Positions 3-36,631 of a DNA stretch of 64,000 nt are shown here, piece by piece; position 1 is the first letter of the stretch, and the number at the start of each line of letters is the position of its first letter. This DNA is from Schmidtea polychroa (Eukaryota): assembly GCA_044892525.1 (NCBI GenBank), contig CM097886.1, forward strand, positions 88,102,001-88,166,000. The letters run 5' to 3'. The notes beneath the pieces were generated by a model that saw only the letters and a list, made by a program, of their open reading frames with translations, did no database searches and had not been told where the DNA came from. The position numbers and the translations under genes are program-made.

Positions 3-431
3 AACCAGAAATTCCGTCTGTTTGAAACAAGTAATAAATATTGCACTCCAGAGATGTGCCAGCAAATTTCTCTAATAATAACTAAATTAAAATTAATTGT
101 TAACCAAATCAATGTAAAAGAAACAGCCGAAACCAATTGCGATATTGACAATCCAACTACCAACAATGATGTTTTGGACCCTATCGTTGTCATAGAAGAA
201 ATCAACTGTATGAAATGTAATAACATCCTTGAAAAATTCATTTTGGCCAGAGAAGGAATGAATGTTAACATTTGTGAAAACTGTTTATTTGACGCCATTT
301 CCACTGATCAATCAAATTCTAGTCAAGTCAATCCAATCCCTACAGAGACTATTGAAGAACCTCTCACAAAGAAATCTGCTACAAAATCGCGAGCTACGAC
401 ACTAAAAAAACAATCATCGAAGACCAAATGA
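3..431 (+). CDS. ORF1 C-terminal part (copy 1), includes C4 zinc finger
   Basis: Matches the last ~143 codons of the 845-aa ORF1 of copy 2; ends at TGA 429-431. Confidence 0.85.
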   Translation, partial: NQKFRLFETSNKYCTPEMCQQISLIITKLKLIVNQINVKETAETNCDIDNPTTNNDVLDPIVVIEEINCMKCNNILEKFILAREGMNVNICENCLFDAISTDQSNSSQVNPIPTETIEEPLTKKSATKSRATTLKKQSSKTK

Positions 432-497: not shown

Positions 498-3400
498 ATA
501 GATAATTACTATTTACCAATTGACGATTTTGATCCTGAAATGTGGTTCTCTGATAATGATATTGATTGGTATCTTGAAAACCATATCGACAATCCAATGC
601 ATGGATACATCAAATGCTTCATCGTTAATATTCTATGCTCGAATATTCAAGAAGAAATTGTTGCAATTCCACAGTCAATTACCAATGCTGAAATGATTTT
701 TTGTCCACTTAATATAAACAATTCCCATTGGATTCTTTTTGTATACTGTAAGAAATCAAATTCATCTTACTTTATTGATCCAATTTTTAATAACCGAAAT
801 AATCTAATCAACAAACAAATGGCTCTTAAAATGAATATTGCACTAAATAGATTTTTCAACCTCAAGATAGCAGTGTCATATCATCCGCATACAAATCTTC
901 AATATCAAAATAACAACTTTGACTGTGGTCCATTCACTTGCGCTTATGCAGTGATAATCAGTAAAGATTGGAACAGCTTTCCTGATGGATTCATTGAAGA
1001 AATAAGACGAAATGTTCATCGATATCAGAAACACTTGGTTAATGGTGCACCAAATTTAATTGGAGGTGCTAAAAACAATTTAAATATGGCAACAATCAAT
1101 TTCAAGAAGGCTATCGCTAAATCTAAAACTACAAATAATAATTTAAACATTACTAAAATTCTCAACAACCAAGCGCCATGTGTGTCATCACTAATTGGTA
1201 AATATTATAAAGAGAATTCTAAAATCTTGGTTTTATCTGCCAATTTAACATCCAATTTAATTGCGCAAAATGACTCTTTTATAGCCGACAATGTCACCTT
1301 TAAACAATTTAAAGGAATCGATCACATTCTTGGTGTCATTCCAAAATTTAAAGATTGGTGTCTTTTCATATATTCCAGCAAACTTAACCGTAGCTACATT
1401 TTTGATTTTAATTATAGAAATATTGATGAGAGATTGATTGAAATTGGTGAAAAGATGACCGATTATCTCAATCAATTTTGTCTTAATCGAAAAATTAAAT
1501 TCATAGCTGATCATCGAATCTCGCATCCTTCCTTTCACTCTAATGACAATCAATACTTCGCAAGTTCCTTTATTGTGTTTTTTGAGAAATTTGTCTTTGA
1601 AAGACTCTTGGATTATGATAAAGTATATGATACACTTGGTGAATTAAAATCTCAGTCGTGCATTGAAATTTCTCCCAACTTTAATTTAATCAACGGTAAA
1701 ATAACTGATAAAATTATTAATGAATATTTTATGAACCTAAAATTATCGAATAATTATATTCTCCTAAACAGAACTTTGTCTGCTGCAATTTCAGATGATT
1801 GTACTCAATACTTAAATGATTTTTTAAACATTGAGGACATGATGAAGGCAAATGTAATCTTTGCAATAATTTCTCCTCCCAAGGCCCATGAATTGCTGTT
1901 GGTAATTGATTACGACACAGACGAACATTATTTTCTTAGTCCAGTGACCAATGATTTGAATGTGTTTTCTAAAGCTTTCTCTTATAACATTGTGCTCAAA
2001 ATTAATGAGCTAAGACAAAGTAAAGGGCGTTCAATGACAATTGGCCACTGCCCACATGATATAAGAGGTTCTGGTTTATTTAGCAAAATATTAATTTGTG
2101 CATTTATCAGAAACTACACTCAAGATAAATCTCTTGAAAATATTAACTTGACTGAAATTTCTGAAATAATCAACTCTCTAGTTCCAATAGTTGATAATAA
2201 TGACATTGTCAAAATTGAGAGACGTGGAAAATTGAAAATTGCTAATTCTTTGAAACTAACTTTGAAGCAACGCAAAGATAGAATTGATGAGCTTTTAACT
2301 ACATTGTCTAACTCTAATGTTGATGAAATTATCTCTACTATTCTGGCAAATATTCCTCATCTAGAAAATTTGCAGGATCAAGAATTTCGAGAGCCATATC
2401 TTGGGAAAAATCACAATAAACCTAAAAAATTCAACAATTCTACTGAATTTCTGAAAAATATGAAAAAGACTGTAAACAGAATTTTAGGTAATCAGAGCGA
2501 AAAAGCTGAACCACCATTTCAGGAAATTATAAACACTTTCACTCATCAAGATACTTTACCTGGAAGTTGGAACAACGTTTTAAACTTTAGTAAAATCTCG
2601 AAAAGCTTACTTGAATTAGAAATTACTACGCCAATGGAAATTCTTTCCAATCTTCAGGAAGCTGATAATTCTACGCCCGGACTTGATAATGTATATTATA
2701 AAGATCTTCTGTTACTTGATCCAGATTGTAAGCTTCTAGCGTTACTTTTCAACAAAGTCATTCAACTGAAATCTATCCCTACAAGTTGGAAAACTTTTAA
2801 AACAATATTAATTCCGAAACCTGATAAAAATGACCAATACCATAAAATATCTTCATGGCGACCAATCGCATTACTGTCAGTGATTTACAAAGTTTTCGCT
2901 TCAGTTCTTGCAACTCGTCTTAGTTCATGGATTAAAGAAAATAATCTGCTGCATATTGGCCAAAAGGGTGGTTCAGAATACGAAGGATGTATTGAACACA
3001 ACTCAATTCTCTCTGCGATTGTCGAGCATTCAAAATATAGTAAATCTTCACCTTTAGCAATAGCATGGCTTGACATCAAAGACGCTTTCGGAAGTGTTCC
3101 ACACGAATACATGTGGACATTGTTAAGATATATGAACGTTGGTGAAAACTTTGTGAATATCCTGAAATTACTTTATACAGATACGAGCTCTTTTTATCGC
3201 TGTAACAAAATGCAGACACCAAATATTCCAATAAAGAAAGGTGTAAAACAAGGCTGCCCGATCTCTATGATTCTGTTTGCAATAGCTATTAATCCGGTTC
3301 TTGAAGCTATTACCGCATCTAACATTACACCTTTTATGATAGGCTCTTCTCAAGTACAAGTGTTAGCTTATGCTGATGACATTGCACTTATTGCAACTAG

Positions 3401-5033
3401 CTCAACTGACCTCCAAAAGCTAATTGATGTAGCTGTAAAAACTGCCAATAATATTGGATTTGAATATCGCCCTGAAAAATGTGCATATATACAATACCCA
3501 AAACTAGAAACGGTCAGTGAAATCGTTGTCAACAATGATTTAATTAAAAAACTTGCTGGTAATGAATTTTACCAATACTTAGGAGTGCCAATAGGTGATA
3601 ATAATGATCAAAGTCCCTATGAAATCGTCAGCCAAGTCATTGAAGATACTAAAAAGATTGCTAACTCTGATCTCTATGGTTGGCAAAAGCTCAAAGCTTA
3701 TAAAATCTTCCTGCATTCGCGCCTTATTTTCCCATTTAGAACTAGGGAAATTAAAACTAGTTCATTAACATCTCCTAGTAGTAACTCAAGGATAAATGTA
3801 AATAGTACTAGCCAATTGAGGAGCCATTTGAGGAAAATATTAAATTTACCAAACCACTCTGAAATAAGTTATTTCTATAATGCCACTGAAAATGGTGGAG
3901 CTGGCTGTATTGACCTTCTTGATGAGTATCACACACAGTCGATTGTTTACTTCTTCCGTTTACTAACATCAACTTGCGACTATTCAAAAAAGATAAACAC
4001 TTTTTCACTCTTGTCTGTGACAAGTCCAAGACTCGGAATCAAAGAACCAACTCTCAGTCAAAGCTTGGAATGGGTTAATGGAAAAGAAAGCAAATTAAAT
4101 CATAGTGGTAGTAAAACTCGCTTCTACCGATTGCGTGCATCAATTGCATATTTCAATCGAGTTCACAACATTAAAATTTCGTTCGAAACTTTCAAACAAA
4201 ATCCTTCGATTCGGCTCACTACTTCATTAACTGGCACTCGCATATTATTACCAAAATTAAGAAAAGCATTATCAAAGATTCTCCATTCTGCTCTTCAAGA
4301 TTCGTATCTCGAAAAGTGGGAGAAGAGTAATCAAAGTAATCTAATTGTATCTGCTCTCAAACTTTGTCCATTTGTCAACAAACTAATCTTTCGTAGTGAC
4401 TTGACAGACTTTGAATGGAATTTCATTCATCGAGCTCGAACAAATACACTCTCTACATTTGCAAAGCCACATAAAACTGGCGAAGACCGCCTTTGTCGTA
4501 GGTGTAAATCTGAAGATGAGACAATTTTACATGTACTCCAAACTTGTAGAATCAATCAATCATTAGCAACTAATCGACATAATGCTTGCTTGGAAAAAAT
4601 TAAAGATGCACTTAAAAATCCTGAACTCTTGGTTGTCACTGATCATAAATGTTCTCTTGTACCGACTTCCAACGAACGGGTTGATCTTTTAATAACCAAT
4701 ACCGAGAGAAAAACGATTTTACTAGTAGACATGAAATGTCCAATTGATTCTGTAATTAATTTTGAGCGAGTCGACAAATTAAATATGGAAAAATATGATA
4801 AATTAAAAACAGATATACAAACAGTTAAACCTGATTACAAAGTTGAATTGTTCACATGCATCATGGGTTCCTTGGGATCAATTGAACCAAAAACTTCTGA
4901 TCTTTTATTAAAAATGGGAATTCCACAAACAAAAATCAAAGGTTTGATGAAGGAATGTGCAATAAGTAACATTGCACATTCGGCAAAGATTTGGTATTTT
5001 CATTGTAATGGAAAGCTTCCAAACTTTGAATAA
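438..5033 (+). CDS. ORF2: Ulp1/C48-like protease x3, reverse transcriptase, CCHC knuckle, restriction-like endonuclease (1531 aa)
   Basis: H97/D114/Q157/C163 protease motifs; WRPIALLS, QKGG, DIKDAFGSV, GVKQGCPIS, YADD (978-981), YLG; C1353-x2-C-x8-H-x4-C; RHN, D1416, D1431-x-K1433. True start uncertain (GTG; frame is open from 432). Confidence 0.95.
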   Translation: MPASAQASAVPSNETDAESTIDNYYLPIDDFDPEMWFSDNDIDWYLENHIDNPMHGYIKCFIVNILCSNIQEEIVAIPQSITNAEMIFCPLNINNSHWILFVYCKKSNSSYFIDPIFNNRNNLINKQMALKMNIALNRFFNLKIAVSYHPHTNLQYQNNNFDCGPFTCAYAVIISKDWNSFPDGFIEEIRRNVHRYQKHLVNGAPNLIGGAKNNLNMATINFKKAIAKSKTTNNNLNITKILNNQAPCVSSLIGKYYKENSKILVLSANLTSNLIAQNDSFIADNVTFKQFKGIDHILGVIPKFKDWCLFIYSSKLNRSYIFDFNYRNIDERLIEIGEKMTDYLNQFCLNRKIKFIADHRISHPSFHSNDNQYFASSFIVFFEKFVFERLLDYDKVYDTLGELKSQSCIEISPNFNLINGKITDKIINEYFMNLKLSNNYILLNRTLSAAISDDCTQYLNDFLNIEDMMKANVIFAIISPPKAHELLLVIDYDTDEHYFLSPVTNDLNVFSKAFSYNIVLKINELRQSKGRSMTIGHCPHDIRGSGLFSKILICAFIRNYTQDKSLENINLTEISEIINSLVPIVDNNDIVKIERRGKLKIANSLKLTLKQRKDRIDELLTTLSNSNVDEIISTILANIPHLENLQDQEFREPYLGKNHNKPKKFNNSTEFLKNMKKTVNRILGNQSEKAEPPFQEIINTFTHQDTLPGSWNNVLNFSKISKSLLELEITTPMEILSNLQEADNSTPGLDNVYYKDLLLLDPDCKLLALLFNKVIQLKSIPTSWKTFKTILIPKPDKNDQYHKISSWRPIALLSVIYKVFASVLATRLSSWIKENNLLHIGQKGGSEYEGCIEHNSILSAIVEHSKYSKSSPLAIAWLDIKDAFGSVPHEYMWTLLRYMNVGENFVNILKLLYTDTSSFYRCNKMQTPNIPIKKGVKQGCPISMILFAIAINPVLEAITASNITPFMIGSSQVQVLAYADDIALIATSSTDLQKLIDVAVKTANNIGFEYRPEKCAYIQYPKLETVSEIVVNNDLIKKLAGNEFYQYLGVPIGDNNDQSPYEIVSQVIEDTKKIANSDLYGWQKLKAYKIFLHSRLIFPFRTREIKTSSLTSPSSNSRINVNSTSQLRSHLRKILNLPNHSEISYFYNATENGGAGCIDLLDEYHTQSIVYFFRLLTSTCDYSKKINTFSLLSVTSPRLGIKEPTLSQSLEWVNGKESKLNHSGSKTRFYRLRASIAYFNRVHNIKISFETFKQNPSIRLTTSLTGTRILLPKLRKALSKILHSALQDSYLEKWEKSNQSNLIVSALKLCPFVNKLIFRSDLTDFEWNFIHRARTNTLSTFAKPHKTGEDRLCRRCKSEDETILHVLQTCRINQSLATNRHNACLEKIKDALKNPELLVVTDHKCSLVPTSNERVDLLITNTERKTILLVDMKCPIDSVINFERVDKLNMEKYDKLKTDIQTVKPDYKVELFTCIMGSLGSIEPKTSDLLLKMGIPQTKIKGLMKECAISNIAHSAKIWYFHCNGKLPNFE

Positions 5034-5382
5034 TTAAAATAAATTGGTTTTCAACATAGGAAAATAATTAAATTTAAAACTTTTATTAATTTGATTATTA
5101 AAACAAACCAAATTTAAATTTCATTAAAAAAAATAAACTAATTATTAAAGAAACTTTCATTTTTTCGAGATAAATATTCTGCGACAAAGCAAATTTAAGA
5201 ATTTAGATCTTCAATCTACCAAAGACAAGTCGCAATGCCGGATGATGAAATCCGATGAGAGTGATCAGAGATTCCAGCAGATGAAGTTAATATGTGAATA
5301 TTTGCTTATGGACAACTCCATGTAGAGCTGATTATCTGTTAAAAACAATATTCAAATTTGTTATATTTAATAAATGTTTAAT
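5034..5382 (+). promoter_or_regulatory. Element 3' UTR with hairpin cluster and AATAAA (5369-5374); no poly(A) tail
   Basis: 347-349 bp in all 7 complete 3' ends; several inverted repeats at 5180-5340. Confidence 0.7.
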
Positions 5383-5436
5383 TAGCGCGTCAGTCTCATA
5401 ATCTGAAGGTCGTGAGTTCGATCCTCACTCGGGGCA
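5383..5436 (+). pseudogene. 5'-truncated tRNA-Met (nt 20-73) at element 3' junction
   Basis: Lacks nt 1-19 including the A box. Confidence 0.92.
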
Positions 5437-6045: not shown

Positions 6046-8583
6046 ATGACTAACGGAGAAAACAAGATGATGCAATCGCCTGACGCAATGCATCAACAAG
6101 ATATGCACACTGGAGTTCAATCAACGACTGCAGAAGGATTATGTAATTATGCAATTGATATGAAGAAACTTCAGAAATTATTCCAATATCAATTGCAATC
6201 AAATCAAGCTCTTTTGGATTTCTTCAGTCAATTCAAAGCTGGATTTCATATGCCTTCCATGGAGAATTCAATGAACAATGTCCTTCCAAACAAGCCGGAA
6301 AATCAGTTTCAGAATTTCGAGAAACGTTTGGATTTAATGGAGATTTCATTCTCAAAGAAGCTTGAAAGGTTAGAGTGTTTATCTTTGAATTTTGGGGGTT
6401 TCTTTAATAATTTAAATAATTTCAATAAATTTTCTTTAAATAAAGATTTTTTCCATTTTAAAGATAATAAAATTAATGAAATTTCAAATTTAGATAATTG
6501 TAATTTTAATAATTCATCAATTGTCAATAAGGATTTTAATATAGAGTTTGATAAATTTCCTTTAAATAAAAATTCTTGTAATGTTAATAATTCAACTTCT
6601 GATAAAAATCTCAATATTAATGTGAATAACGATTTAAATAAGGATAGTGCAAATTTCGATAATTTTAAAATTTCAATAAATAATAATACACGTTTTGACA
6701 ATCCTAAAGTGTTTGTTTCCAAACCGATAATAAGTAATAAAAGTTTTGATTTTAAGACTTTTATTCGTATTTTAACAAAAAAAGAGCGAAAACAGCTCTA
6801 TAATAAGTTTCCAACTTTGATTCCTTTAACTAAAATTAAGGAATCAAAGAATAAATATTTAAAATTAAATAAAGTTTTATCTGGGGAGGAATTTAATACC
6901 AATCCTTTAGGTTTAGATAATTTTAAATGTTTTCTTTATAGGAATTTTAATTTCTGTGTTGAGTTTCATATAAGTAGTTTTTTAAATGAAAACTCAACCG
7001 TTAAACCTGTCTCTTATAAAAAGAAAATTTTTTTGTCTGAACATAATATTGTAAAGACTTTTCCTAATTTTTCTAATTATATAGCAGCACCAACTTCAAT
7101 TAAAAGATTTTTATTTAATCTTTCGCCTGAGCTTTCTGAAACAGTTTCTATTACAGATTGTAATCATAGAGAAAATAAAATTAATAAAATCATTTCTTCT
7201 TTGATTAAACAAGATAAACTCCCAAATTATCTGGTAAAATCAAAAATTAAATATCAAAAGGGTGAGTTTATATTGTTAGATTTGACAAACCCAAATATAA
7301 CATCCAAGATAAATAACGATTTCACATCATCAACATTTTCCGAACTCTCTCGTACCCAGATGAAATCTCTCTACTCATCTTATCCTTCTCTTAAAGAGAT
7401 TATGTTTGTTGAGAATCCTGACTCAAAATCATCTTCAATTATTAAGTTGATTGAATCTTTAAAAATCGATAATGTGTTTCCTGAAGATATCTTTTTTGAA
7501 GGGGGTAAATTCTTTCAATCTGATATTAAACACAAAGAACCCAATTCATTTCCTGACATAATGTTTAATCTTGGGTTATTTGATCTAATAAACATGGCAA
7601 AAGATGATGTTGAATTAAAATCAATTTTGACTAAAACAGATTGTCACTTTAAAATTGTTGAGATAGTATTTTATCTAAATTACTTGGGTTTGGTTGGATC
7701 CTTAAAATTTTCTCAAAATCAAACTTATTCTGATTATGTTGTGAACTATATTCGAAATTGTTGTTTATTAAATTCACTCTGTTCGCTTGAAGATCTTTCT
7801 CTTCTCTCGCTTGAAAATTTTGAAAGTTGGGCTTCTGAAATTATTCAAAGGATTCCAAACTCGTCTTTTTATTATACAAATTGTCAAGAAAAACTCTTGA
7901 AATTAAAACAATGGAAAATTTCTGGGGAAATTAAAAAGATCCATAACGTAATATCTCCAGAAACTATAGCATGTGTTAATAGTTTTCTTGATCTTGTTGA
8001 CGAAACCTTTCCCAATAAATTTCAAAACAATAATATCCTTACTAAATTAATGGAAACAATTAATAATGAGAAATTAATAGATGACACATATGGCGTTAAA
8101 GCGAAGCGATTTATTTATTTTTTGTTGAGAGATACAAAGAAATTGATGGATAAAAACCAGAAATTCCGTCTGTTTGAAACAAGTAATAAATATTGCACTC
8201 CAGAGATGTGCCAGCAAATTTCTCTAATAATAACTAAATTAAAATTAATTGTTAACCAAATCAATGTAAAAGAAACAGCCGAAACCAATTGCGATATTGA
8301 CAATCCAACTACCAACAATGATGTTTTGGACCCTATCGTTGTCATAGAAGAAATCAACTGTATGAAATGTAATAACATCCTTGAAAAATTCATTTTGGCC
8401 AGAGAAGGAATGAATGTTAACATTTGTGAAAACTGTTTATTTGACGCCATTTCCACTGATCAATCAAATTCTAGTCAAGTCAATCCAATCCCTACAGAGA
8501 CTATTGAAGAACCTCTCACAAAGAAATCTGCTACAAAATCGCGAGCTACGACACTAAAAAAACAATCATCGAAGACCAAATGA
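6046..8583 (+). CDS. ORF1, 845 aa, unknown function (coiled-coil-like N-term, Asn-rich tract, C4 finger, basic tail)
   Basis: 2.5-kb open frame in very AT-rich DNA, conserved across copies; C772-x2-C-x18-C-x2-C797. Confidence 0.88.
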   Translation: MTNGENKMMQSPDAMHQQDMHTGVQSTTAEGLCNYAIDMKKLQKLFQYQLQSNQALLDFFSQFKAGFHMPSMENSMNNVLPNKPENQFQNFEKRLDLMEISFSKKLERLECLSLNFGGFFNNLNNFNKFSLNKDFFHFKDNKINEISNLDNCNFNNSSIVNKDFNIEFDKFPLNKNSCNVNNSTSDKNLNINVNNDLNKDSANFDNFKISINNNTRFDNPKVFVSKPIISNKSFDFKTFIRILTKKERKQLYNKFPTLIPLTKIKESKNKYLKLNKVLSGEEFNTNPLGLDNFKCFLYRNFNFCVEFHISSFLNENSTVKPVSYKKKIFLSEHNIVKTFPNFSNYIAAPTSIKRFLFNLSPELSETVSITDCNHRENKINKIISSLIKQDKLPNYLVKSKIKYQKGEFILLDLTNPNITSKINNDFTSSTFSELSRTQMKSLYSSYPSLKEIMFVENPDSKSSSIIKLIESLKIDNVFPEDIFFEGGKFFQSDIKHKEPNSFPDIMFNLGLFDLINMAKDDVELKSILTKTDCHFKIVEIVFYLNYLGLVGSLKFSQNQTYSDYVVNYIRNCCLLNSLCSLEDLSLLSLENFESWASEIIQRIPNSSFYYTNCQEKLLKLKQWKISGEIKKIHNVISPETIACVNSFLDLVDETFPNKFQNNNILTKLMETINNEKLIDDTYGVKAKRFIYFLLRDTKKLMDKNQKFRLFETSNKYCTPEMCQQISLIITKLKLIVNQINVKETAETNCDIDNPTTNNDVLDPIVVIEEINCMKCNNILEKFILAREGMNVNICENCLFDAISTDQSNSSQVNPIPTETIEEPLTKKSATKSRATTLKKQSSKTK

Positions 8584-11500
8584 AGATGTGTGCCTGCATC
8601 AGCTCAAGCGTCTGCCGTTCCCTCTAATGAGACTGATGCAGAGAGCACAATAGATAATTACTATTTACCAATTGACGATTTTGATAGTGAAATGTGGTTC
8701 TCTGATAATGATATTGATTGGTATCTTGAAAACCATATCGACAATCCAATGCATGGATACATCAAGTGTTTCATCGTTAATATTCTATGCTCGAATATTC
8801 AAGAAGAAATTGTTGCAATTCCACAGTCAATTACCAATGCTGAAATGATTTTTTGTCCACTTAATATAAACAATTCCCATTGGATTCTTTTTGTATACTG
8901 TAAGAAATCGAATTCATCTTACTTTATTGATCCAATTTTTAATAACAGAAATAATCTAATCAACAAACAAATGGCTCTTAAAATGAATATTGCACTAAAT
9001 AGATTTTTCAACCTCAAGATAGCAGTGTCATATCATCCGCATACAAATCTTCAATATCAAAATAACAATTTTGACTGTGGTCCATTCACTTGCGCTTATG
9101 CAGTGATAATCAGTAAAGATTGGAACAGCTTTCCTGATGGATTCATTGAAGAAATAAGACGAAATGTTCATCGATATCAGAAACACTTGGTTAATGGTTC
9201 ACCAAATTTAATTGGAGGTGCTAAAAACAATTTAAATATGGCAACAATCAATTTCAAGAAGGCTATCACTAAATCTAAAACTACAAATAATAATTTAAAC
9301 ATTACTAAAATTCTCAACAACCAAGCGCCATGTGTGTCATCACTAATTGGTAAATATTATAAAGAGAATTCTAAAATCTTGGTTTTATCTGCCAATTTAA
9401 CATCCAATTTAATTGCGCAAAATGACTCTTTTATAGCCGACAATGTCACCTTTAAACAATTTAAAGGAATCGATCACATTCTTGGTGTCATTCCAAAATT
9501 TAAAGATTGGTGTCTTTTCATATACTCCAGTAAGCTTAACCGTAGCTACATTTTTGATTTTAATTATAGAAATATTGATGAGAGATTGATTGAAATTGGT
9601 GAAAAGATGACCGATTATCTCAATCAATTTTGTCTTAATCGAAAAATTAAATTCATAGCTGATCATCGAATCTCGCATCCTTCCTTTCACTCTAATGACA
9701 ATCAATACTTTGCAAGTTCCTTTATTGTGTTTTTTGAGAAATTTGTCTTTGAAAGACTCTTGGATTATGATAAAGTATATGATACACTTGGTGAATTAAA
9801 ATCTCAGTCGTGCATTGAAATTTCTCCCAACTTTAATTTAATCAACGGTAAAATAACTGATAAAATTATTAATGAATATTTTATGAACCTAAAATTATCG
9901 AATAATTATATTCTCCTAAACAGAACTTTGTCTGCTGCAATTTCAGATGATTGTACTCAATACTTAAATGATTTTTTAAACATTGAGGACATGATGAAGG
10001 CAAATGTAATCTTTGCAATAATTTCTCCTCCCAAGGCCCATGAATTGCTGTTGGTAATTGATTACGACACAGACGAACATTATTTTCTTAGTCCAGTGAC
10101 CAATGATTTGAATGTGTTTTCTAAAGCTTTCTCTTATAACATTGTGCTCAAAATTAATGAGCTAAGACAAAGTAAAGGGCGTTCAATGACAATTGGCCAC
10201 TGCCCACATGATATAAGAGGTTCTGGTTTATTTAGCAAAATATTAATTTGTGCATTTATCAGAAACTACACTCAAGATAAATCTCTTGAAAATATTAACT
10301 TGACTGAAATTTCTGAAATAATCAACTCTCTAGTTCCAATAGTTGATAATAATGACATTGTCAAAATTGAGAGACGTGGAAAATTGAAAATTGCTAATTC
10401 TTTGAAACTAACTTTGAAGCAACGCAAAGATAGAATTGATGAGCTTTTAACTACATTGTCTAACTCTAATGTTGATGAAATTATCTCTACTATTCTGGCA
10501 AATATTCCTCATCTAGAAAATTTGCAGGATCAAGAATTTCGAGAGCCATATCTTGGGAAAAATCACAATAAACCTAAAAAATTCAACAATTCTACTGAAT
10601 TTCTGAAAAATATGAAAAAGACTGTAAACAGAATTTTAGGTAATCAGAGCGAAAAAGCTGAACCACCATTTCAGGAAATTATAAACACTTTCACTCATCA
10701 AGATACTTTACCTGGAAGTTGGAACAACGTTTTAAACTTTAGTAAAATCTCGAAAAGCTTACTTGAATTAGAAATTACTACGCCAATGGAAATTCTTTCC
10801 AATCTTCAGGAAGCTGATAATTCTACGCCCGGACTTGATAATGTATATTATAAAGATCTTCTGTTACTTGATCCAGATTGTAAGCTTCTAGCGTTACTTT
10901 TCAACAAAGTCATTCAACTGAAATCTATCCCTACAAGTTGGAAAACTTTTAAAACAATATTAATTCCGAAACCTGATAAAAATGACCAATACCATAAAAT
11001 ATCTTCATGGCGACCAATCGCATTACTGTCAGTGATTTACAAAGTTTTCGCTTCAGTTCTTGCAACTCGTCTTAGTTCATGGATTAAAGAAAATAATCTG
11101 CTGCATATTGGCCAAAAGGGTGGTTCAGAATACGAAGGATGTATTGAACACAACTCAATTCTCTCTGCGATTGTCGAGCATTCAAAATATAGTAAATCTT
11201 CACCTTTAGCAATAGCATGGCTTGACATCAAAGACGCTTTCGGAAGTGTTCCACACGAATACATGTGGACATTGTTAAGACATATGAACGTTGGTGAAAA
11301 CTTTGTGAATATCCTGAAATTACTTTATACAGATACGAGCTCTTTTTATCGCTGTAACAAAATGCAGACACCAAATATTCCAATAAAGAAAGGTGTAAAA
11401 CAAGGCTGCCCGATCTCTATGATTCTGTTTGCAATAGCTATTAATCCGGTTCTTGAAGCTATTACCGCATCTAACATTACACCTTTTATGATAGGCTCTT

Positions 11501-17698: not shown

Positions 17699-20600
17699 AG
17701 ATGTGTGCCTGCATCAGCTCAAGCGTCTGCCGTTCCCTTTAATGAGACTGATGCAGAGAGCACAATAGATAATTACTATTTAACAATTGACGATTTTGAT
17801 AGTGAAATGTGGTTCTCTGATAATGATATTGATTGGTATCTTGAAAACCATATCGACAATCCAATGCATGGATACATCAAGTGTTTCATCGTTAATATTC
17901 TATGCTCGAATATTCAAGAAGAAATTGTTGCAATTCCACAGTCAATTACCAATGCTGAAATGATTTTTTGTCCACTTAATATAAACAATTCCCATTGGAT
18001 TCTTTTTGTATACTGTAAGAAATCGAATTCATCTTACTTTATTGATCCAATTTTTAATAACAGAAATAATCTAATCAACAAACAAATGGCTCTTAAAATG
18101 AATATTGCACTAAATAGATTTTTCAACCTCAAGATAGCAGTGTCATATCATCCGCATACAAATCTTCAATATCAAAATAACAATTTTGACTGTGGTCCAT
18201 TCACTTGCGCTTATGCAGTGATAATCAGTAAAGATTGGAACAGCTTTCCTGATGGATTCATTGAAGAAATAAGACGAAATGTTCATCGATATCAGAAACA
18301 CTTGGTTAATGGTTCACCAAATTTAATTGGAGGTGCTAAAAACAATTTAGATATGGCAACAATCAATTTCAAGAAGGCTATCGCTAAATCTAAAACTACA
18401 AATAATAATTTAAACATTACTAAAGTTCTCAACAACCAAGCGCCATGTGTGTCATCACTAATTGATAAATATTATAAAGAGAATTCTAAAATCTTGGTTT
18501 TATCTGCCAATTTAACATCCAATTTAATTGCGCAAAATGACTCTTTTATAGCCGACAATGTCACCTTTAAACAATTTAAAGGAATCGATCACATTCTTGG
18601 TGTCATTCCAAAATTTAAAGATTGGTGTCTTTTCATATACTCCAGTAAGCTTAACCGTAGCTACATTTTTGATTTTAATTATAGAAATATTGATGAGAGA
18701 TTGATTGAAATTGGTGAAAAGATGACCGATTATCTCAATCAATTTTGTCTTAATCGAAAAATTAAATTCATAGCTGATCATCGAATCTCGCATCCTTCCT
18801 TTCACTCTAATGACAATCAATACTTTGCAAGTTCCTTTATTGTGTTTTTTGAGAAATTTGTCTTTGAAAGACTCTTGGATTATGATAAAGTATATGATAC
18901 ACTTGGTGAATTAAAATCTCAGTCGTGCATTGAAATTTCTCCCAACTTTAATTTAATCAACGGGAAAATAACTGATAAAATTATTAATGAATATTTTATG
19001 AACCTAAAATTATCGAATAATTATATTCTCCTAAACAGAACTTTGTCTGCTGCAATTTCAGATGATTGTACTCAATACTTAAATGATTTTTTAAACCTTG
19101 AGGACATGATGAAGGCAAATGTAATCTTTGCAATAATTTCTCCTCCCAAGGCCCATGAATTGCTGCTGGTAATTGATTACGACACAGACGAACATTATTT
19201 TCTTAGTCCAGTGACCAATGATTTGAATGTGTTTTCTCAAGCTTTCTCTTATAACATTGTGCTCAAAATTAATGAGCTACGACAAAGTAAAGGGCGTGCA
19301 ATGACAATTGGTCACTGCCCACATGATATAAGAGGTTCTGGTTTATTTAGCAAAATATTAATTTGTGCATTTATCAGAAACTACACTCAAGATAAATCTC
19401 TTGAAAATATTAACTTGACTGAAATTTCTGAAATAATCAACTCTCTAGTTCCAATGGTTGATAATAATGACATTGTCAAAATTGAGAGACGTGGAAAATT
19501 GAAAATTGCTAATTCTTTGAAACTAACTTTGAAGCAACGCAAAGATAGAATTGATGAGCTTTTAACTACATTGTCTAACTCTAATGTTGATGAAATTATT
19601 TCTACTATTCTGGCAAATATTCCTCATCTAGAAAATTTGCAGGATCAAGAATTTCGAGAGCCATATCTTGGGAAAAATCACAATAAACCTAAAAAATTCA
19701 ACAATTCTACTGAATTTCTGAAAAATATGAAAAAAACTGTAAACAGAATTCTAGGTAATCAGAGCGAAAAAGCTGAACCACCATTTCAGGAAATTATAAA
19801 CACTTTCACTCATCAAGATACTTTACCTGGAAGTTGGAACAACGTTTTAAACTTTAGTAAAATCTCGAAAAGCTTACTTGAATTAGAAATTACTACGCCA
19901 ATGGAAATTCTTTCCAATCTTCAGGAAGCTGATAATTCTACGCCGGGACTTGATAATGTATATTATAAAGATCTTCTGTTACTCGATCCAGATTGTAAGC
20001 TTCTAGCGTTACTTTTCAACAAAATCATTCAACTGAAATCTATCCCTACAAGTTGGAAAACTTTTAAAACAATATTAATTCCGAAACCTGATAAAAATGA
20101 CCAATACCATAAAGTATCTTCATGGCGACCAATCGCATTACTGTCAGTGATTTACAAAGTTTTCGCTTCAGTTCTTGCAACTCGTCTTAGTTTATGGATT
20201 AAAGAAAATAATCTGCTGCATATTGGCCAAAAGGGTGGCTCAGAATACGAAGGATGTATTGAACACAACTCAATTCTCTCTGCGATTGTCGAGCATTCAA
20301 AATATAGTAAATCTTCACCTTTAGCAATAGCCTGGCTTGACATCAAAGACGCTTTCGGAAGTGTTCCACACGAATACATGTGGACATTGTTAAGACATAT
20401 GAACGTTGGTGAAAACTTTGTGAATATCCTGAAATTACTTTATACAGATACGAGCTCGTTTTATCGCTGCAACAAAATGCAGACACCGAATATTCCAATT
20501 AAGAAAGGTGTAACACAAGGTTGCCCGATCTCTATGATTCTGTTTGCAATAGCTATTAATCCGGTTCTTGAAGCTATTACCGCATCTAACATTACACCTT

Positions 20601-22870: not shown

Positions 22871-22943
22871 GCCTCAATAGCGCAGTAGGTAGCGCGTCAG
22901 TCTCATAATCTGAAGGTCGTGAGTTCGATCCTCACTCGGGGCA
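22871..22943 (+). tRNA. tRNA-Met(CAT), G6A variant
   Basis: A6-C67 acceptor-stem mismatch. Confidence 0.85.
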
Positions 22944-25855: not shown

Positions 25856-28800
25856 AGATGTGTGCCTGCATCAGCTCAAGCGTCTGCCGTTCCCTTTAAT
25901 GAGACTGATGCAGAGAGCACAATAGATAATTACTATTTAACAATTGACGATTTTGATAGTGAAATGTGGTTCTCTGATAATGATATTGATTGGTATCTTG
26001 AAAACCATATCGACAATCCAATGCATGGATACATCAAGTGTTTCATCGTTAATATTCTATGCTCGAATATTCAAGAAGAAATTGTTGCAATTCCACAGTC
26101 AATTACCAATGCTGAAATGATTTTTTGTCCACTTAATATAAACAATTCCCATTGGATTCTTTTTGTATACTGTAAGAAATCGAATTCATCTTACTTTATT
26201 GATCCAATTTTTAATAACAGAAATAATCTAATCAACAAACAAATGGCTCTTAAAATGAATATTGCACTAAATAGATTTTTCAACCTCAAGATAGCAGTGT
26301 CATATCATCCGCATACAAATCTTCAATATCAAAATAACAATTTTGACTGTGGTCCATTCACTTGCGCTTATGCAGTGATAATCAGTAAAGATTGGAACAG
26401 CTTTCCTGATGGATTCATTGAAGAAATAAGACGAAATGTTCATCGATATCAGAAACACTTGGTTAATGGTTCACCAAATTTAATTGGAGGTGCTAAAAAC
26501 AATTTAGATATGGCAACAATCAATTTCAAGAAGGCTATCGCTAAATCTAAAACTACAAATAATAATTTAAACATTACTAAAGTTCTCAACAACCAAGCGC
26601 CATGTGTGTCATCACTAATTGATAAATATTATAAAGAGAATTCTAAAATCTTGGTTTTATCTGCCAATTTAACATCCAATTTAATTGCGCAAAATGACTC
26701 TTTTATAGCCGACAATGTCACCTTTAAACAATTTAAAGGAATCGATAACATTCTTGGTGTCATTCCAAAATTTAAAGATTGGTGTCTTTTCATATACTCC
26801 AGTAAGCTTAACCGTAGCTACATTTTTGATTTTAATTATAGAAATATTGATGAGAGATTGATTGAAATTGGTGAAAAGATGACCGATTATCTCAATCAAT
26901 TTTGTCTTAATCGAAAAATTAAATTCATAGCTGATCATCGAATCTCGCATCCTTCCTTTCACTCTAATGACAATCAATACTTTGCAAGTTCCTTTATTGT
27001 GTTTTTTGAGAAATTTGTCTTTGAAAGACTCTTGGATTATGATAAAGTATATGATACACTTGGTGAATTAAAATCTCAGTCGTGCATTGAAATTTCTCCC
27101 AACTTTAATTTAATCAACGGTAAAATAACTGATAAAATTATTAATGAATATTTTATGAACCTAAAATTATCGAATAATTATATTCTCCTAAACAGAACTT
27201 TGTCTGCTGCAATTTCAGATGATTGTACTCAATACTTAAATGATTTTTTAAACATTGAGGACATGATGAAGGCAAATGTAATCTTTGCAATAATTTCTCC
27301 TCCCAAGGCCCATGAATTGCTGTTGGTAATTGATTACGACACAGACGAACATTATTTTCTTAGTCCAGTGACCAATGATTTGAATGTGTTTTCTAAAGCT
27401 TTCTCTTATAACATTGTGCTCAAAATTAATGAGCTAAGACAAAGTAAAGGGCGTTCAATGACAATTGGCCACTGCCCACATGATATAAGAGGTTCTGGTT
27501 TATTTAGCAAAATATTAATTTGTGCATTTATCAGAAACTACACTCAAGATAAATCTCTTGAAAATATTAACTTGACTGAAATTTCTGAAATAATCAACTC
27601 TCTAGTTCCAATAGTTGATAATAATGACATTGTCAAAATTGAGAGACGTGGAAAATTGAAAATTGCTAATTCTTTGAAACTAACTTTGAAGCAACGCAAA
27701 GATAGAATTGATGAGCTTTTAACTACATTGTCTAACTCTAATGTTGATGAAATTATCTCTACTATTCTGGCAAATATTCCTCATCTAGAAAATTTGCAGG
27801 ATCAAGAATTTCGAGAGCCATATCTTGGGAAAAATCACAATAAACCTAAAAAATTCAACAATTCTACTGAATTTCTGAAAAATATGAAAAAGACTGTAAA
27901 CAGAATTTTAGGTAATCAGAGCGAAAAAGCTGAACCACCATTTCAGGAAATTATAAACACTTTCACTCATCAAGATACTTTACCTGGAAGTTGGAACAAC
28001 GTTTTAAACTTTAGTAAAATCTCGAAAAGCTTACTTGAATTAGAAATTACTACGCCAATGGAAATTCTTTCCAATCTTCAGGAAGCTGATAATTCTACGC
28101 CCGGACTTGATAATGTATATTATAAAGATCTTCTGTTACTTGATCCAGATTGTAAGCTTCTAGCGTTACTTTTCAACAAAGTCATTCAACTGAAATCTAT
28201 CCCTACAAGTTGGAAAACTTTTAAAACAATATTAATTCCGAAACCTGATAAAAATGACCAATACCATAAAATATCTTCATGGCGACCAATCGCATTACTG
28301 TCAGTGATTTACAAAGTTTTCGCTTCAGTTCTTGCAACTCGTCTTAGTTCATGGATTAAAGAAAATAATCTGCTGCATATTGGCCAAAAGGGTGGTTCAG
28401 AATACGAAGGATGTATTGAACACAACTCAATTCTCTCTGCGATTGTCGAGCATTCAAAATATAGTAAATCTTCACCTTTAGCAATAGCATGGCTTGACAT
28501 CAAAGACGCTTTCGGAAGTGTTCCACACGAATACATGTGGACATTGTTAAGACATATGAACGTTGGTGAAAACTTTGTGAATATCCTGAAATTACTTTAT
28601 ACAGATACGAGCTCTTTTTATCGCTGTAACAAAATGCAGACACCAAATATTCCAATAAAGAAAGGTGTAAAACAAGGCTGCCCGATCTCTATGATTCTGT
28701 TTGCAATAGCTATTAATCCGGTTCTTGAAGCTATTACCGCATCTAACATTACACCTTTTATGATAGGCTCTTCTCAAGTACAAGTGTTAGCTTATGCTGA

Positions 28801-31261: not shown

Positions 31262-31334
31262 GCCTCAATAGCGCAGTAGGTAGCGCGTCAGTCTCATAAT
31301 CTGAAGGTCGTGAGTTCGATCCTCACTCGGGGCA
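31262..31334 (+). tRNA. tRNA-Met(CAT), G6A variant
   Basis: A6-C67 mismatch. Confidence 0.85.
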
Positions 31335-32219: not shown

Positions 32220-32292
32220 GCCTCAATAGCGCAGTAGGTAGCGCGTCAGTCTCATAATCTGAAGGTCGTGAGTTCGATCCTCACTCGGGGCA
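32220..32292 (+). tRNA. tRNA-Met(CAT), G6A variant
   Basis: A6-C67 mismatch. Confidence 0.85.
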
Positions 32293-32454: not shown

Positions 32455-32527
32455 GCCTCGATAGCGCAGTATGTAGCGCGTCAGTCTCATAATCTGAAGG
32501 TCGTGAGTTCGATCCTCACTCGGGGCA
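32455..32527 (+). tRNA. tRNA-Met(CAT), G18T variant (possibly impaired)
   Basis: AGTATGTA D-loop; invariant G18 lost. Confidence 0.75.
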
Positions 32528-33171: not shown

Positions 33172-33244
33172 GCCTCGATAGCGCAGTATGTAGCGCGTCA
33201 GTCTCATAATCTGAAGGTCGTGAGTTCGATCCTCACTCGGGGCA
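33172..33244 (+). tRNA. tRNA-Met(CAT), G18T variant (possibly impaired)
   Basis: AGTATGTA D-loop. Confidence 0.75.
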
Positions 33245-33647: not shown

Positions 33648-33720
33648 GCCTCAATAGCGCAGTAGGTAGCGCGTCAGTCTCATAATCTGAAGGTCGTGAG
33701 TTCGATCCTCACTCGGGGCA
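33648..33720 (+). tRNA. tRNA-Met(CAT), G6A variant
   Basis: A6-C67 mismatch. Confidence 0.85.
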
Positions 33721-34094: not shown

Positions 34095-36631
34095 ATGACT
34101 AACGAAGAAAACAAGATGATGCAATCGCCTTATGCAATGCATCAACAAGATATGCACGCTGGAGTTCAATCAACGACTGCAGATGGATTATGTAATTATG
34201 CAATTGATATGAAGAAACTTCAGAAATTATTCCAATTTCAATTGCAATCAAATCAGGCTCTTTTGGATTTCTTCAGTCAATTCAAAGCTGGATTTCATAT
34301 GCCTTCCATGGAGAATTCAATGAACAATGTCCTTCCAAACAAGCCGGAAAATCAGTTTCAGAATTTCGAGAAACGTTTAGATTTAATGGAGATTTCATTC
34401 TCAAAGAAGCTTGAAAGGTTAGAGTGTTTATCTTTGAATTTTGAGGGTTTCTTTAATAATTTAAATAATTTCAATAAATTTTCTTTAAATAAAGATTTTT
34501 TCCATTTTAAAGATAATAAAATTAATGAAATTTCAAATTTAGATAATTGTAATTTTAATAATTCATCAATTGTCAATAAGGATTTTAATATAGAGTTTGA
34601 TAAATTTCCTTTAAATAAAAATTCTTGTAATGTTAATAATTCAACTTCTGATAAAAATCTAAAAATTAATGTGAATAACGATTTAAATAAGGATAGTCAA
34701 AATTTCGATAATTTTAAAATTTCAATGAATAATAATACACGTTTTGACAATCCTAAAGTGTTTGTTTCCAAACCGATAATAAGTAATAAAAGTTTTGATT
34801 TTAAGACTTTTATTCGTATTTTAACAAAAAAAGAGCGAAAACAGCTCTATAATAAGTTTCCAACTTTGATTCCTTTAACTAAAATTAAGGAATCAAAGAA
34901 TAAATATTTAAAATTAAATAAATTTTTATCTGGGGAGGAATTTAATGCCAATCCTTTAGGTTTAGATAATTTTAAATGTTTTTTTTATAGGAATTTTAAT
35001 TTCTGTGTTGAGTTTCATATAAGTAGTTTTTTAAATGAAAACTCAACCGTTAAACCTGTCTCTTATAAAAAGAAAATATTTTGTCTGAACATAATATTGT
35101 AAAGACTTTTCCTAATTTTTCTAATTATATAGCAGCACCAACTTCAATTAAAAGATTTTTATTTAATCTTTCGCCTGAGCTTTCTGAAACAGTTTCTATT
35201 ACAGATTGTAATCATAGAGAAAATAAAATTAATAAAATCATTTCTTCTTTGATTAAACAAGATAAACTCCCAAATTATCTGGTTAAATCAAAAATTAAAT
35301 ATCAAAAGGGTGAGTTTATATTGTTAGATTTGACAAACCCAAATATAACATCCAAGATAAATAACGATTTCACATCATCAACATTTTCCGAACTCTCTCG
35401 TACCCAGATGAAATCTCTCTACTCATCTTATCCTTCTCTTAAAGAGATTATGTTTGTTGAGAATCCTGACTCAAAATCATCTTCAATTATTAAGTTGATT
35501 GAATCTTTAAAAATCGATAATGTGTTTCCTGAAGATATCTTTTTTGAAGGGGGTAAATTCTTTCAATTTGATATTAAATACAAAGAACCCAATTCATTTC
35601 CTGACATAATGTTTAATCTTGGGTTATTTGATCTAATAAACATGGCAAAAGATGATGTTGAATTAAAATCAATTTTGACTAAAACAGATTGTCACTTTAA
35701 AATTGTTGAGATAGTATTTTATCTAAATTACTTGGGTTTGGTTGGATCCTTAAAATTTTCTCAAAATCAAACTTATTCTGATTATGTTGTCAACTATATT
35801 CGAAATTGTTGTTTATTAAATTCACTCTGTTCGCTTGAAGATCTTTCTCTTCTCTCGCTTGAAAATTTTGAATGTTGGGCTTCTGAAATTATTCAAAGGA
35901 TTCCAAACTCGTCTTTTTATTATACAAATTGTCAAGAAAAACTCTTGAAATTAAAACAATGGAAAATTTCTGGGGAAATTAAAAAGATCCATAACGTAAT
36001 ATCTCCAGAAACTATAGCATGTGTTAATAGTTTTCTTGATCTTGTTGACGAAACCTTTCCCAATAAATTTCAAAACAATAATATCCTTACTAAATTAATG
36101 GAAACAATTAATAATGAGAAATTAATAGATGACACATATGGCGTTAAAGCGAAGCGATTTATTTATTTTTTGTTGAGAGATACAAAGAAATTGATGGATA
36201 AAAACCAGAAATTCCGTCTGTTTGAAACAAGTAATAAATATTGCACTCCAGAGATGTGCCAGCAAATTTCTCTAATAATAACTAAATTAAAATTAATTGT
36301 TAACCAAATCAATGTAAAAGAAACAGCCGAAACCAATTGCGATATTGACAATCCAACTACCAACAATGATGTTTTGGACCCTATCGTTGTCATAGAAGAA
36401 ATCAACTGTATGAAATGTAATAACATCCTTGAAAAATTCATTTTGGCCAGAGAAGGAATGAATGTTAACATTTGTGAAAACTGTTTATTTGACGCCATTT
36501 CCACTGATCAATCAAATTCTAGTCAAGTCAATCCAATCCCTACAGAGACTATTGAAGAACCTCTCACAAAGAAATCTGCTACAAAATCGCGAGCTACGAC
36601 ACTAAAAAAACAATCATCGAAGACCAAATGA
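34095..36631 (+). pseudogene. ORF1 with 1-bp deletion at ~35077
   Basis: aaaaTATTTTgtc versus aaaaTTTTTTTgtc; split into 335-aa and 516-aa ORFs. Confidence 0.8.

Follow-up and report, generated by a model that had tools for sequence, protein, structure and literature searches.

One complete and two triad-less Ulp1/C48-like domains in tandem in ORF2 of a tRNA-gene retrotransposon of Schmidtea polychroa

Results

The locus

We analyzed 64 kb of contig CM097886.1 of Schmidtea polychroa (assembly GCA_044892525.1, positions 88,102,001 to 88,166,000), referred to as the window. The window is AT-rich (GC ~31%) and is made of arrays of a 241-bp unit, each unit with a tRNA-Met(CAT) gene (29 tRNA-Met genes), broken up by eight copies of a non-LTR (lacking long terminal repeats) retrotransposon of ~7.5 kb. 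Each copy has a first open reading frame (ORF1) that is 845 amino acids (aa) long where intact (e.g., 6046-8583), and a second, ORF2, that encodes three N-terminal domains (d1, d2, and d3), a reverse transcriptase (RT), a zinc finger, and a restriction-like endonuclease (Table 1).

Table 1. Positions of the retrotransposon features, junctions, and variant tRNA genes. Positions are those of the window unless a related locus (L005 to L009) is named.
Feature	Position	Strand	Basis or remark
ORF2 (d1, d2, d3, RT, zinc finger, restriction-like endonuclease), 1531 aa	438-5033	+	first copy; 7 more ORF2s in the window
UGA stop of ORF1, in frame with ORF2	429-431	+	
RNA stem-loop, putative readthrough stimulator	438-496 (5' arm 438-450; 3' arms 481-489 and 493-496)	+	
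d1, Ulp1/C48 domain, catalytically complete by its residues, aa 30-205	525-1052	+	Pfam PF02902 (Peptidase_C48)
d1 catalytic codons	H97 726-728; D114 777-779; Q157 906-908; C163 924-926	+	
G209-G210 within L-I-G-G-A (aa 207-211), candidate self-cleavage site	1062-1067	+	conserved GG(G)
d2, predicted CE-clan fold without catalytic triad, aa 236-412 as modelled (domain ~240-405)	1143-1673	+	AlphaFold2 and Foldseek
d2 sites	His position, D306 1353-1355; Asp position, D323 1404-1406; place of Cys, ~N371	+	
d3, predicted CE-clan fold with degenerate triad, aa 410-595 as modelled (domain ~410-590)	1665-2222	+	AlphaFold2 and Foldseek
d3 sites	H484 1887-1889; S501 1938-1940; GSG loop 2067-2075; S549 (Cys position) 2082-2084	+	
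Reverse transcriptase domain, aa 792-1051	2811-3590 (YADD 3369-3380)	+	Pfam RVT_1, E 6e-30
C-terminal Cys/His zinc-finger and restriction-like endonuclease motifs	4494-4739 (zinc finger 4494-4547; RVDL..VDMK 4677-4739)	+	translation inspected
d1-d2-d3 region, copy 2	8590-10389	+	
d1-d2-d3 region, further copies	17705-19504, 25862-27661, 36638-38437, 44312-46111, 51986-53785, 61105-62904	+	
ORF1s of copies with decay	34095-36631, 41770-44305, 49444-51979, 59139-61098	+	
ORF2s of decayed copies	51986-56581, 61105-63735	+	
First 3' junction	5383-5436	+	element ends at 5382; tRNA-Met gene resumes at its position 20
3' junctions	5383, 13535, 22649, 30805, 41583, 49257, 56931		
5' junctions	6049, 15165, 23321, 34098, 41773, 49447, 58567		
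Variant tRNA-Met genes	22871-22943, 31262-31334, 32220-32292, 32455-32527, 33172-33244, 33648-33720		
GACTTGCCCATGCTGGCA-like motif in 3' untranslated region	L005 ~5230-5260, L006 ~6960-6990, L008 ~7970-8000, L009 ~7400-7430		

Three tandem clan-CE domains at the N-terminus of ORF2

Judged from sequence comparisons and predicted structures, the first 590 residues of ORF2 comprise three paralogous domains of clan CE (Ulp1/SENP-like) arranged in tandem. The original prediction, made from the letters of the DNA, had placed three such folds at 543-2150, a span that corresponds to aa 36-571 of the ORF2 starting at 438, and had described one as catalytically complete and two as apparently dead. The motifs it quoted are at the residues it gave for them: WFSDNDIDWY (aa 36-45), SHWILF (H97), YFIDP (D114), and QNNNFDCG (Q157 and C163) in d1, KDWCLFIY (D306), RSYIFDF, and QYFASSF in d2, and AHELLLVID (H484), HYFLSP, and RGSGLFS (aa 543-549) in d3. 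Support for the triplication itself came from Pfam, from comparisons of profiles, from predicted structures searched with Foldseek, and from conservation in ~20 relatives.

By its residues, d1 is catalytically complete, with the His-Asp-Cys triad and the oxyanion Gln that had been predicted. It matched PF02902 over aa 80-177 with an E value of 1.5e-9 (38.4 bits; cut-off 20.7), and among PDB sequences it matched SENP8 (1.9e-5) and Ulp1 (8.9e-5). H97, D114, Q157, and C163 were invariant across all true d1 segments, and the catalytic His is followed by W98, giving the HW motif.

The connection of d2 and d3 to C48 rests on profile-profile comparison, a bridge domain, and structure, because a library search gave no cellular Ulp1. 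This whole-library search with a d2+d3 profile found 18 proteins, all from the same retroelement family as the window element, and no cellular Ulp1 was among the 18. Pfam had no relevant match at E values up to 10 to d2 or d3, either from the window element or from four relatives. Among PDB sequences, nothing was found with a three-sequence d2+d3 profile or with a 13-sequence d2 profile; with a d3 profile, the sole matches at E values up to 10 were Ulp1 and SENP1, with S549 of d3 placed opposite residue 603 in the structure of SENP1 C603S.

Comparisons among the three domains connected each with the other two. BLASTP matched d1 to d2 (E 1e-4) and to d3 (E 0.002) in the same register, over the region of the His strand and the Asp strand. 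Using family alignments with no sequences in common, hhalign matched d1 to d2 with an E value of 2.5e-5 over 136 columns and d1 to d3 with an E value of 4.3e-6 over 158 columns. The match between d2 and d3 had an E value of 8.9e-7 with alignments from which the bridge sequences P0017 and P0018 had been left out. An earlier, deep d2-d3 comparison (99.4%) was discarded because P0017 and P0018 were in both alignments, and alignments of three sequences gave weak matches with probabilities of 3-18%. The second domain of P0018 scored 36, 30, and 41 bits against hidden Markov models (HMMs) of d1, d2, and d3, respectively, and was near the threshold of Pfam C48 (E 0.01; 16.1 bits, below the cut-off of 20.7), and it therefore bridges the three domains. 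At the catalytic sites it reads KMKW, LDP, and DSGP.

Predicted structures of d2 and d3 had the clan-CE fold. We modelled the domains with AlphaFold2 from alignments that contained no d1 sequence. The model of d2 (aa 236-412, 13 sequences) had a mean predicted local distance difference test score (pLDDT) of 88.8 and a predicted template-modelling (pTM) score of 0.85; for d3 (aa 410-595, 16 sequences) these were 90.4 and 0.87. For d2 and d3 alike, the 50 PDB matches listed by Foldseek were only CE-clan proteases. The best of the matches listed was Den1/SENP8 (1xt9_A, E 1.8e-5) for d2, with Ulp1 at a template-modelling (TM) score of 0.65, and Ulp1 (1euv_A, E 7.3e-7, TM 0.72, root-mean-square deviation 3.0) for d3. 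In the viral library BFVD, the matches to the d3 model were led by Ulp1-like proteases and included S273R of African swine fever virus (ASFV). AlphaFold with Foldseek was one of the checks that had been suggested along with the original prediction. Both domains came out of it as predicted CE-clan folds, so the failure to model as such folds that was named as refuting the prediction did not occur.

Active-site positions of d2 and d3

We counted residues at the catalytic columns in 21-26 segments per domain, with secondary structure taken from the AlphaFold2 models. By these counts, d2 has no catalytic triad, with both His and Cys lost as predicted. Its His column (D306 in the window) holds D, E, R, I, F, K, Q, N, or M, and His in none of 21 members; its Asp column is Asn or Asp (D323); and the start of the helix that would carry Cys (~N371) has no Cys and is variable.

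The third domain is degenerate rather than stripped. It is probably non-catalytic but has a conserved cleft, because the His, Ser/Asn, and Ser positions are mostly, and not universally, conserved. His occupies its column in 18 of 26 segments (H484 in the window); the other eight members have Leu, Gly, Tyr, Asn, Gln, or Lys there, and some of those with Leu, Gly, or Tyr appear to be intact (e.g., the full-length P0002 and P0010). The Asp column is Asn (18/25) or Asp (6/25), and Ser in the window (S501). At the Cys column, which is the N-terminus of the central helix of d3, there is Ser in 17 of 23 segments (S549 in the window), Asn in five, and Val in one. The GSG loop just before S549 is nearly invariant, and the oxyanion column (R543) is variable. 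The Trp that follows the catalytic His in d1 is missing from d3 and present in eight of 21 d2 segments. The original prediction had d3 without its Asp and Cys. The triad is indeed incomplete, so the view of one complete and two triad-less copies stands, but the positions in question are occupied by Ser/Asn and by Ser, and d3 had been drawn as barer than it is.

Conservation differed between the two domains. In 11 full-length intact ORFs that keep d1, d2, and d3, and whose RTs are 41-61% identical to that of the window element, mean pairwise identity was 0.345 for d1, 0.372 for d3, and lowest, 0.256, for d2. The conserved columns of d2 were mainly hydrophobic. The best-conserved columns of d3 were the former active-site positions, with H484, the pair at 501-502, S545, G546, S549, and C554 conserved. 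The isoelectric points (pI) of d2 and d3 are 8.4 and 5.0.

The layout in relatives

The three-domain layout is old and is found in at least 13 lineages. A word search gave two relatives (42-48% identity) with all three regions conserved, and further full-length members came from a search with the RT half of ORF2. The nearest named RT matches (~30% identity) come from a nematode, arachnids, a coral, and a dragonfly, and these RT proteins are uncharacterized. By local HMMs, the order d1-d2-d3 is present in the window element and in P0001-P0004, P0006, P0008, P0020-P0026, and P0072; P0010 and P0009 have d1 and d3 only; and P0017 and P0018 have d1 and one intermediate domain (dX). Five more distant proteins (P0050, P0055, P0061, P0064, and P0065) carry a single C48 domain, and in three of these proteins C2H2 fingers lie ahead of it, giving the outgroup order zinc finger, single C48, RT. 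Unlike these single-C48 outgroups, ORF2 has no N-terminal zinc fingers. Every member that covers the d3 region has d3.

In an RT tree, the three-domain members formed one clade (99% support), with P0017 outside. P0010 was nested inside this clade, indicating that d2 was lost secondarily in its lineage. In a tree of the domains, a branch set apart each of d1, d2, and d3 (support of 98, 94, and 99%), d2, d3, and dX together were split from d1 at 98%, and the sub-clades mirrored the RT tree. The simplest reading of these patterns is that a single C48 domain gained a pseudo-copy, and that the pseudo-copy was then duplicated, all before the family radiated.

A covarying stem downstream of the UGA between ORF1 and ORF2

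ORF2 is probably translated as part of a fusion with ORF1, given a UGA and a covarying stem that have the signature of programmed readthrough. Exactly one in-frame UGA separates ORF1 from ORF2 in all eight window copies and in nine related loci (L001-L009), i.e., in 10 of 10 elements when the window element is counted once. The contexts are UGA-AGA, UGA-CGG, UGA-CGU, and UGA-CUA, and most ORF2s lack an ATG at their start. RNAalifold predicted 14 pairs from the 10 elements, in a stem that starts at the seventh base after the UGA (a 6-nt spacer). The stem cells were paired in 92% of cases, versus 17-40% with the partners slid, there were compensatory changes at six stem pairs, and the observed values were reached in none of 500 shuffles. 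The stem overlaps the start of ORF2, which accounts for the conserved VPAS...DAES peptide in the first ~25 codons.

A CxxC..(18-22 aa)..CxxC motif, resembling a zinc knuckle, lies ~60-70 residues before the stop of ORF1 in the window element (8363-8440) and in L001, L004, and L007; the ORF1s of L003, L006, L008, and L009 lack it. Pfam had no match to ORF1. In all searches, ORF1 and ORF2 were used as separate queries.

A Gly-Gly motif after d1

GG or GGG, often as LxGG, directly follows d1 in 18 of 21 members, in a linker that is otherwise variable (25% mean identity). Ulp1/SENP/DEN1, adenain, and the ASFV S273R protease are known to cut after Gly-Gly. The readthrough signal and the LxGG after d1, neither of which figures in the original prediction, together point to polyprotein processing as the likely job of d1.

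Copies, junctions, and genomic settings

The array holds a mixture of intact and decayed copies, as seen from split ORF1s, a stop at codon 807 of one ORF2, and a last ORF2 that is degenerate beyond codon ~877. ORF1 is split into two overlapping ORFs in several copies (335+516, 502+369, and 310+369 aa). The first 600 codons of ORF2 are open in all eight copies, with 0-11 amino-acid differences. The seven full-length ORF2s are 98.4-99.9% identical in DNA; the last, partial and degenerate copy is ~91% identical. The window copies have diverged after insertion, and the relatives from outside the window are saturated. At the C-terminus of ORF2, the zinc-finger motif CRRC..H..C has a weak match to Pfam zf-RVT (aa 1332-1374), and the RVDL..VDMK motif, which matched no Pfam model, was assigned by inspection to the PD-D/ExK type of endonuclease.

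The element is inserted at a fixed place in the tRNA-Met unit. The 3' junction at tRNA-Met position 20, near the A-box region, is identical in all seven complete copies, and seven identical 5' junctions each lie 31 nt upstream of a tRNA start, so that ~50 bp of the unit is replaced per insertion. These common junctions may reflect precise integration with target deletion, or amplification of the element together with the unit by unequal crossing-over. At the 5' end, the first ATG of ORF1 spans the junction and comes from the flanking spacer. The tRNA-Met looks metazoan. Point variants occur in some of its genes in the arrays, with G6 changed to A in the acceptor stem or with GTAGG changed to GTATG in the D-loop. 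Unit lengths alternate in the long array (periods of 241 and 476 in Tandem Repeats Finder), which suggests a two-unit higher-order repeat.

Several of the related loci are also in settings of the RNA polymerase III type. L006 (7040-8323) has a tRNA-Val truncated in the D-loop and then three intact tRNA-Val genes, and L009 (7470-7560) has the 3' part of a tRNA-Phe, starting in the D-loop. The 3' ends of L005 and L003 carry short stubs that look tRNA-Leu-like and tRNA-Ala-like, respectively, judged from 10-17 nt. ARAGORN found no tRNAs in L001-L005, in which the flanks are too short. In L008 (1-115), the 3' part of a metazoan signal recognition particle RNA is just upstream of the element, and L007 has a ~300-bp tandem repeat on both flanks. 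Four diverged elements have a short motif resembling GACTTGCCCATGCTGGCA in the 3' untranslated region, slightly upstream of the 3' junction; this may be an RNA element recognized by the RT. The motif is not obvious in the 3' untranslated region of the window element.

Discussion

Comparison with known systems

The window element fits the NeSL/Utopia type of the R2 group by its RT, endonuclease motif, protease, and site specificity, compared by description rather than in an RT tree. As described by Kojima & Jurka 2015 (PMC4640811), NeSL-1 and Utopia-1_TSP are nematode non-LTR retrotransposons of the restriction-like endonuclease type with one ORF, and NeSL elements and Utopia-1_TSP have a single N-terminal Ulp1-like protease; the single domain that the original prediction attributed to related elements is found there and in our single-C48 outgroups. 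Like NeSL-1 and Utopia-1_TSP, the window element has a Ulp1/C48 protease upstream of the RT, a C-terminal zinc finger and restriction-like endonuclease, and site-specific insertion into multicopy small-RNA genes, at a fixed position, with relatives in tRNA-Val and tRNA-Phe. Unlike them, it has three tandem C48 folds, two without a triad, a separate ORF1 joined through an in-frame UGA and stem-loop, and an ORF2 without N-terminal zinc fingers. The same paper describes NeSL relatives specific for tRNA genes, NeSL-1_TV (tRNA-Pro) and the planarian LIN15_SM (tRNA-Arg) and LIN25_SM (tRNA-Glu). The window element shares with these an insertion in tRNA genes and may or may not belong to the same family; a tRNA-Met target and a triple domain are not reported in the text covered here. 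Dada was dropped from the comparison of tRNA-targeting retrotransposons because Dada elements are DNA transposons (PMC8869645). In the literature searched, with Repbase entries outside its scope, no paper described elements of this kind with pseudo-Ulp1 domains in tandem or with a signal for readthrough.

The individual parts have counterparts elsewhere. The fold, triad, oxyanion Gln, and HW motif of d1 are those of Ulp1, SENP1-8, and DEN1 (MEROPS family C48, clan CE), and the predicted models of d2 and d3 share the fold (TM 0.59-0.73). In contrast to those cellular proteases of ubiquitin-like proteins (Ubls), d2 and d3 have no catalytic Cys and escape detection by Pfam, and all three domains are in a retroelement polyprotein. 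Viral CE-clan proteases (adenain, ASFV pS273R, and poxvirus I7) cut their own polyprotein after Gly-Gly, and the arterivirus nsp1 papain-like cysteine proteases PCP-alpha/beta are a tandem pair in which one copy lacks the nucleophile and is nevertheless kept. Unlike these viral cases, the host of the domains here is a non-LTR retrotransposon, cleavage is inferred, and there are two pseudo-copies instead of one. In gag-pol of the murine leukemia virus (MLV) type, a stop codon is read through with the help of an RNA structure a few nucleotides downstream. The window element likewise has one in-frame stop, followed within a few nucleotides by an RNA structure; unlike the MLV type, its stop is UGA rather than UAG, and its structure is a simple long-range stem instead of a demonstrated pseudoknot. 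MPN-minus proteins provide another example of an inactive paralogue beside an active isopeptidase-like domain. As with these pseudo-deubiquitinases, d2 and d3 are kept next to a catalytically complete domain; for d2 and d3, a role as partner or activator would be hypothetical.

Proposed mechanism and alternatives

We believe, with a probability of roughly 60% for the three parts jointly, that ORF1 and ORF2 are joined by readthrough, that d1 processes the fusion at the LxGG, and that d2 and d3 are kept as non-catalytic modules. The ribosome would read through the UGA to produce a fusion polyprotein, as in retroviral gag-pol. The processing protease would be d1, most likely cutting after the conserved LxGG just downstream of itself, and d2-d3 would then be the N-terminus of the mature RT-endonuclease. 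Neither d2 nor d3 would cut; the former active-site cleft of d3 would be a binding pocket for a peptide or a ubiquitin-like partner, and d2 a more dispensable spacer or scaffold.

Several points weigh against this explanation. Readthrough, cleavage, and binding are steps that we infer from sequence, the ligand is only putative, and neither d2 nor d3 is basic. The near-conserved His, Asn, and Ser of d3 leave room for residual or altered catalysis. The GG(G) may be no more than a flexible hinge; P0021 and P0015 lack it, and P0010 has GSG instead. At the ORF1/ORF2 boundary, near the C-terminus of ORF1, we found no conserved GG, and ORF1 would therefore stay fused to d1 under this model. The AlphaFold2 alignments are shallow, both trees were made by a quick method, and the domain tree, rooted on d1 by choice and effectively unrooted, came with a long-branch warning in the output.

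Two alternatives give d2 and d3 a part in finding tRNA genes. It is possible, though unlikely, that they are, along the lines of the original prediction, pseudo-proteases that bind SUMO, NEDD8, or ubiquitin as natural substrate traps, and either tether the element to SUMO-rich chromatin of RNA polymerase III (Pol III) at tRNA genes or blunt SUMO-dependent silencing. The CE fold is kept with a conserved cleft, Ser is at the Cys position as in the SENP1 C603S trap mutant, ORF2 lacks the N-terminal zinc fingers of the single-C48 outgroups, and members occupy the D-loop region in different tRNA genes, those for Met, Val, Phe, and probably Leu. In addition, an enrichment of SUMO at tRNA genes has been reported for yeast and for human cells (PMC4448685 and PMC3787255). 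The details of d3 and d2 fit this less well. In Ulp1, the Trp after the catalytic His helps to clamp the Gly-Gly tail, and this Trp (W98 in d1) is lost in d3 and kept in only eight of 21 d2 segments; the His of d3 is replaced in the intact P0002 and P0010, and d2 is dispensable in P0010 and P0009. We think it quite improbable that d2-d3, possibly with ORF1, stand in for the N-terminal zinc-finger/Myb DNA-binding module of R2/NeSL-type elements and recognize the tRNA gene directly or through TFIIIC/TFIIIB. In favor of this, the outgroups have C2H2 fingers, one C48, and RT, and the family has no such fingers in ORF2 and two extra domains exactly between C48 and RT; the 3' junction fixed at tRNA position 20 by the A-box region in seven copies, and the D-loop junctions of related elements in other tRNAs, also favor it. 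However, neither domain is basic, both are conserved across members with different tRNA targets and so cannot hold the sequence specificity, and the CxxC..CxxC motif of some ORF1s could do the job.

The remaining alternatives concern whether d3 is dead and whether d2 and d3 do anything, and both seem to us very improbable. If d3 were still an enzyme, it would be a CE-clan hydrolase using S549, H484, and the Asn/Asp at 501. Its His, Asn/Ser, and Ser columns and its GSG loop are among the best-conserved in d3 in the 11 full-length members, and across all members the three positions are His in 18 of 26, Asn or Asp in 24 of 25, and Ser in 17 of 23. But the His is replaced in eight members, including the intact full-length P0002 and P0010, S549 is Asn in five, the oxyanion column is variable, and CE proteases with Cys changed to Ser serve as dead traps (2g4d). 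That d2 and d3 are functionless relics of duplication, with deletion still pending, would agree with d2 being the least conserved region (identity 0.256) and being gone from P0010 and P0009. It is at odds with the fact that at least 13 lineages, deeply diverged in their RTs, have both domains open and predicted to be foldable, and that d3, present in every member covering its region, is conserved as much as the active d1.

A more specific version of Ubl binding is doubtful, and we offer it as speculation: d3 might be a natural Cys-to-Ser-swapped Ulp1 fold whose His/Asn/Ser cleft reads or slowly turns over a Ubl and so tethers the RT-endonuclease to SUMO-marked Pol III complexes. If true, this would account for a family without zinc fingers being at the same D-loop position in many tRNA genes.

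Implications

Ty3, Ty1, and the Dictyostelium TRE elements are known examples of retroelements that find tRNA genes. If d2 and d3 are Ubl readers or Pol III tethers, they would be a new route for a retroelement to tRNA genes, and would show a protease fold that has naturally become a binding module. If they are neither, the family would still illustrate how a domain of a mobile element is duplicated and loses its catalytic residues. Ulp1-like proteases occur in various transposons, including NeSL, Utopia, Ginger, and some Mutator-like elements, and to our knowledge their role in transposons has never been pinned down. With an active domain by a Gly-Gly site, a readthrough signal, and two pseudo-protease paralogues, the family described here would be a clean handle on that role.

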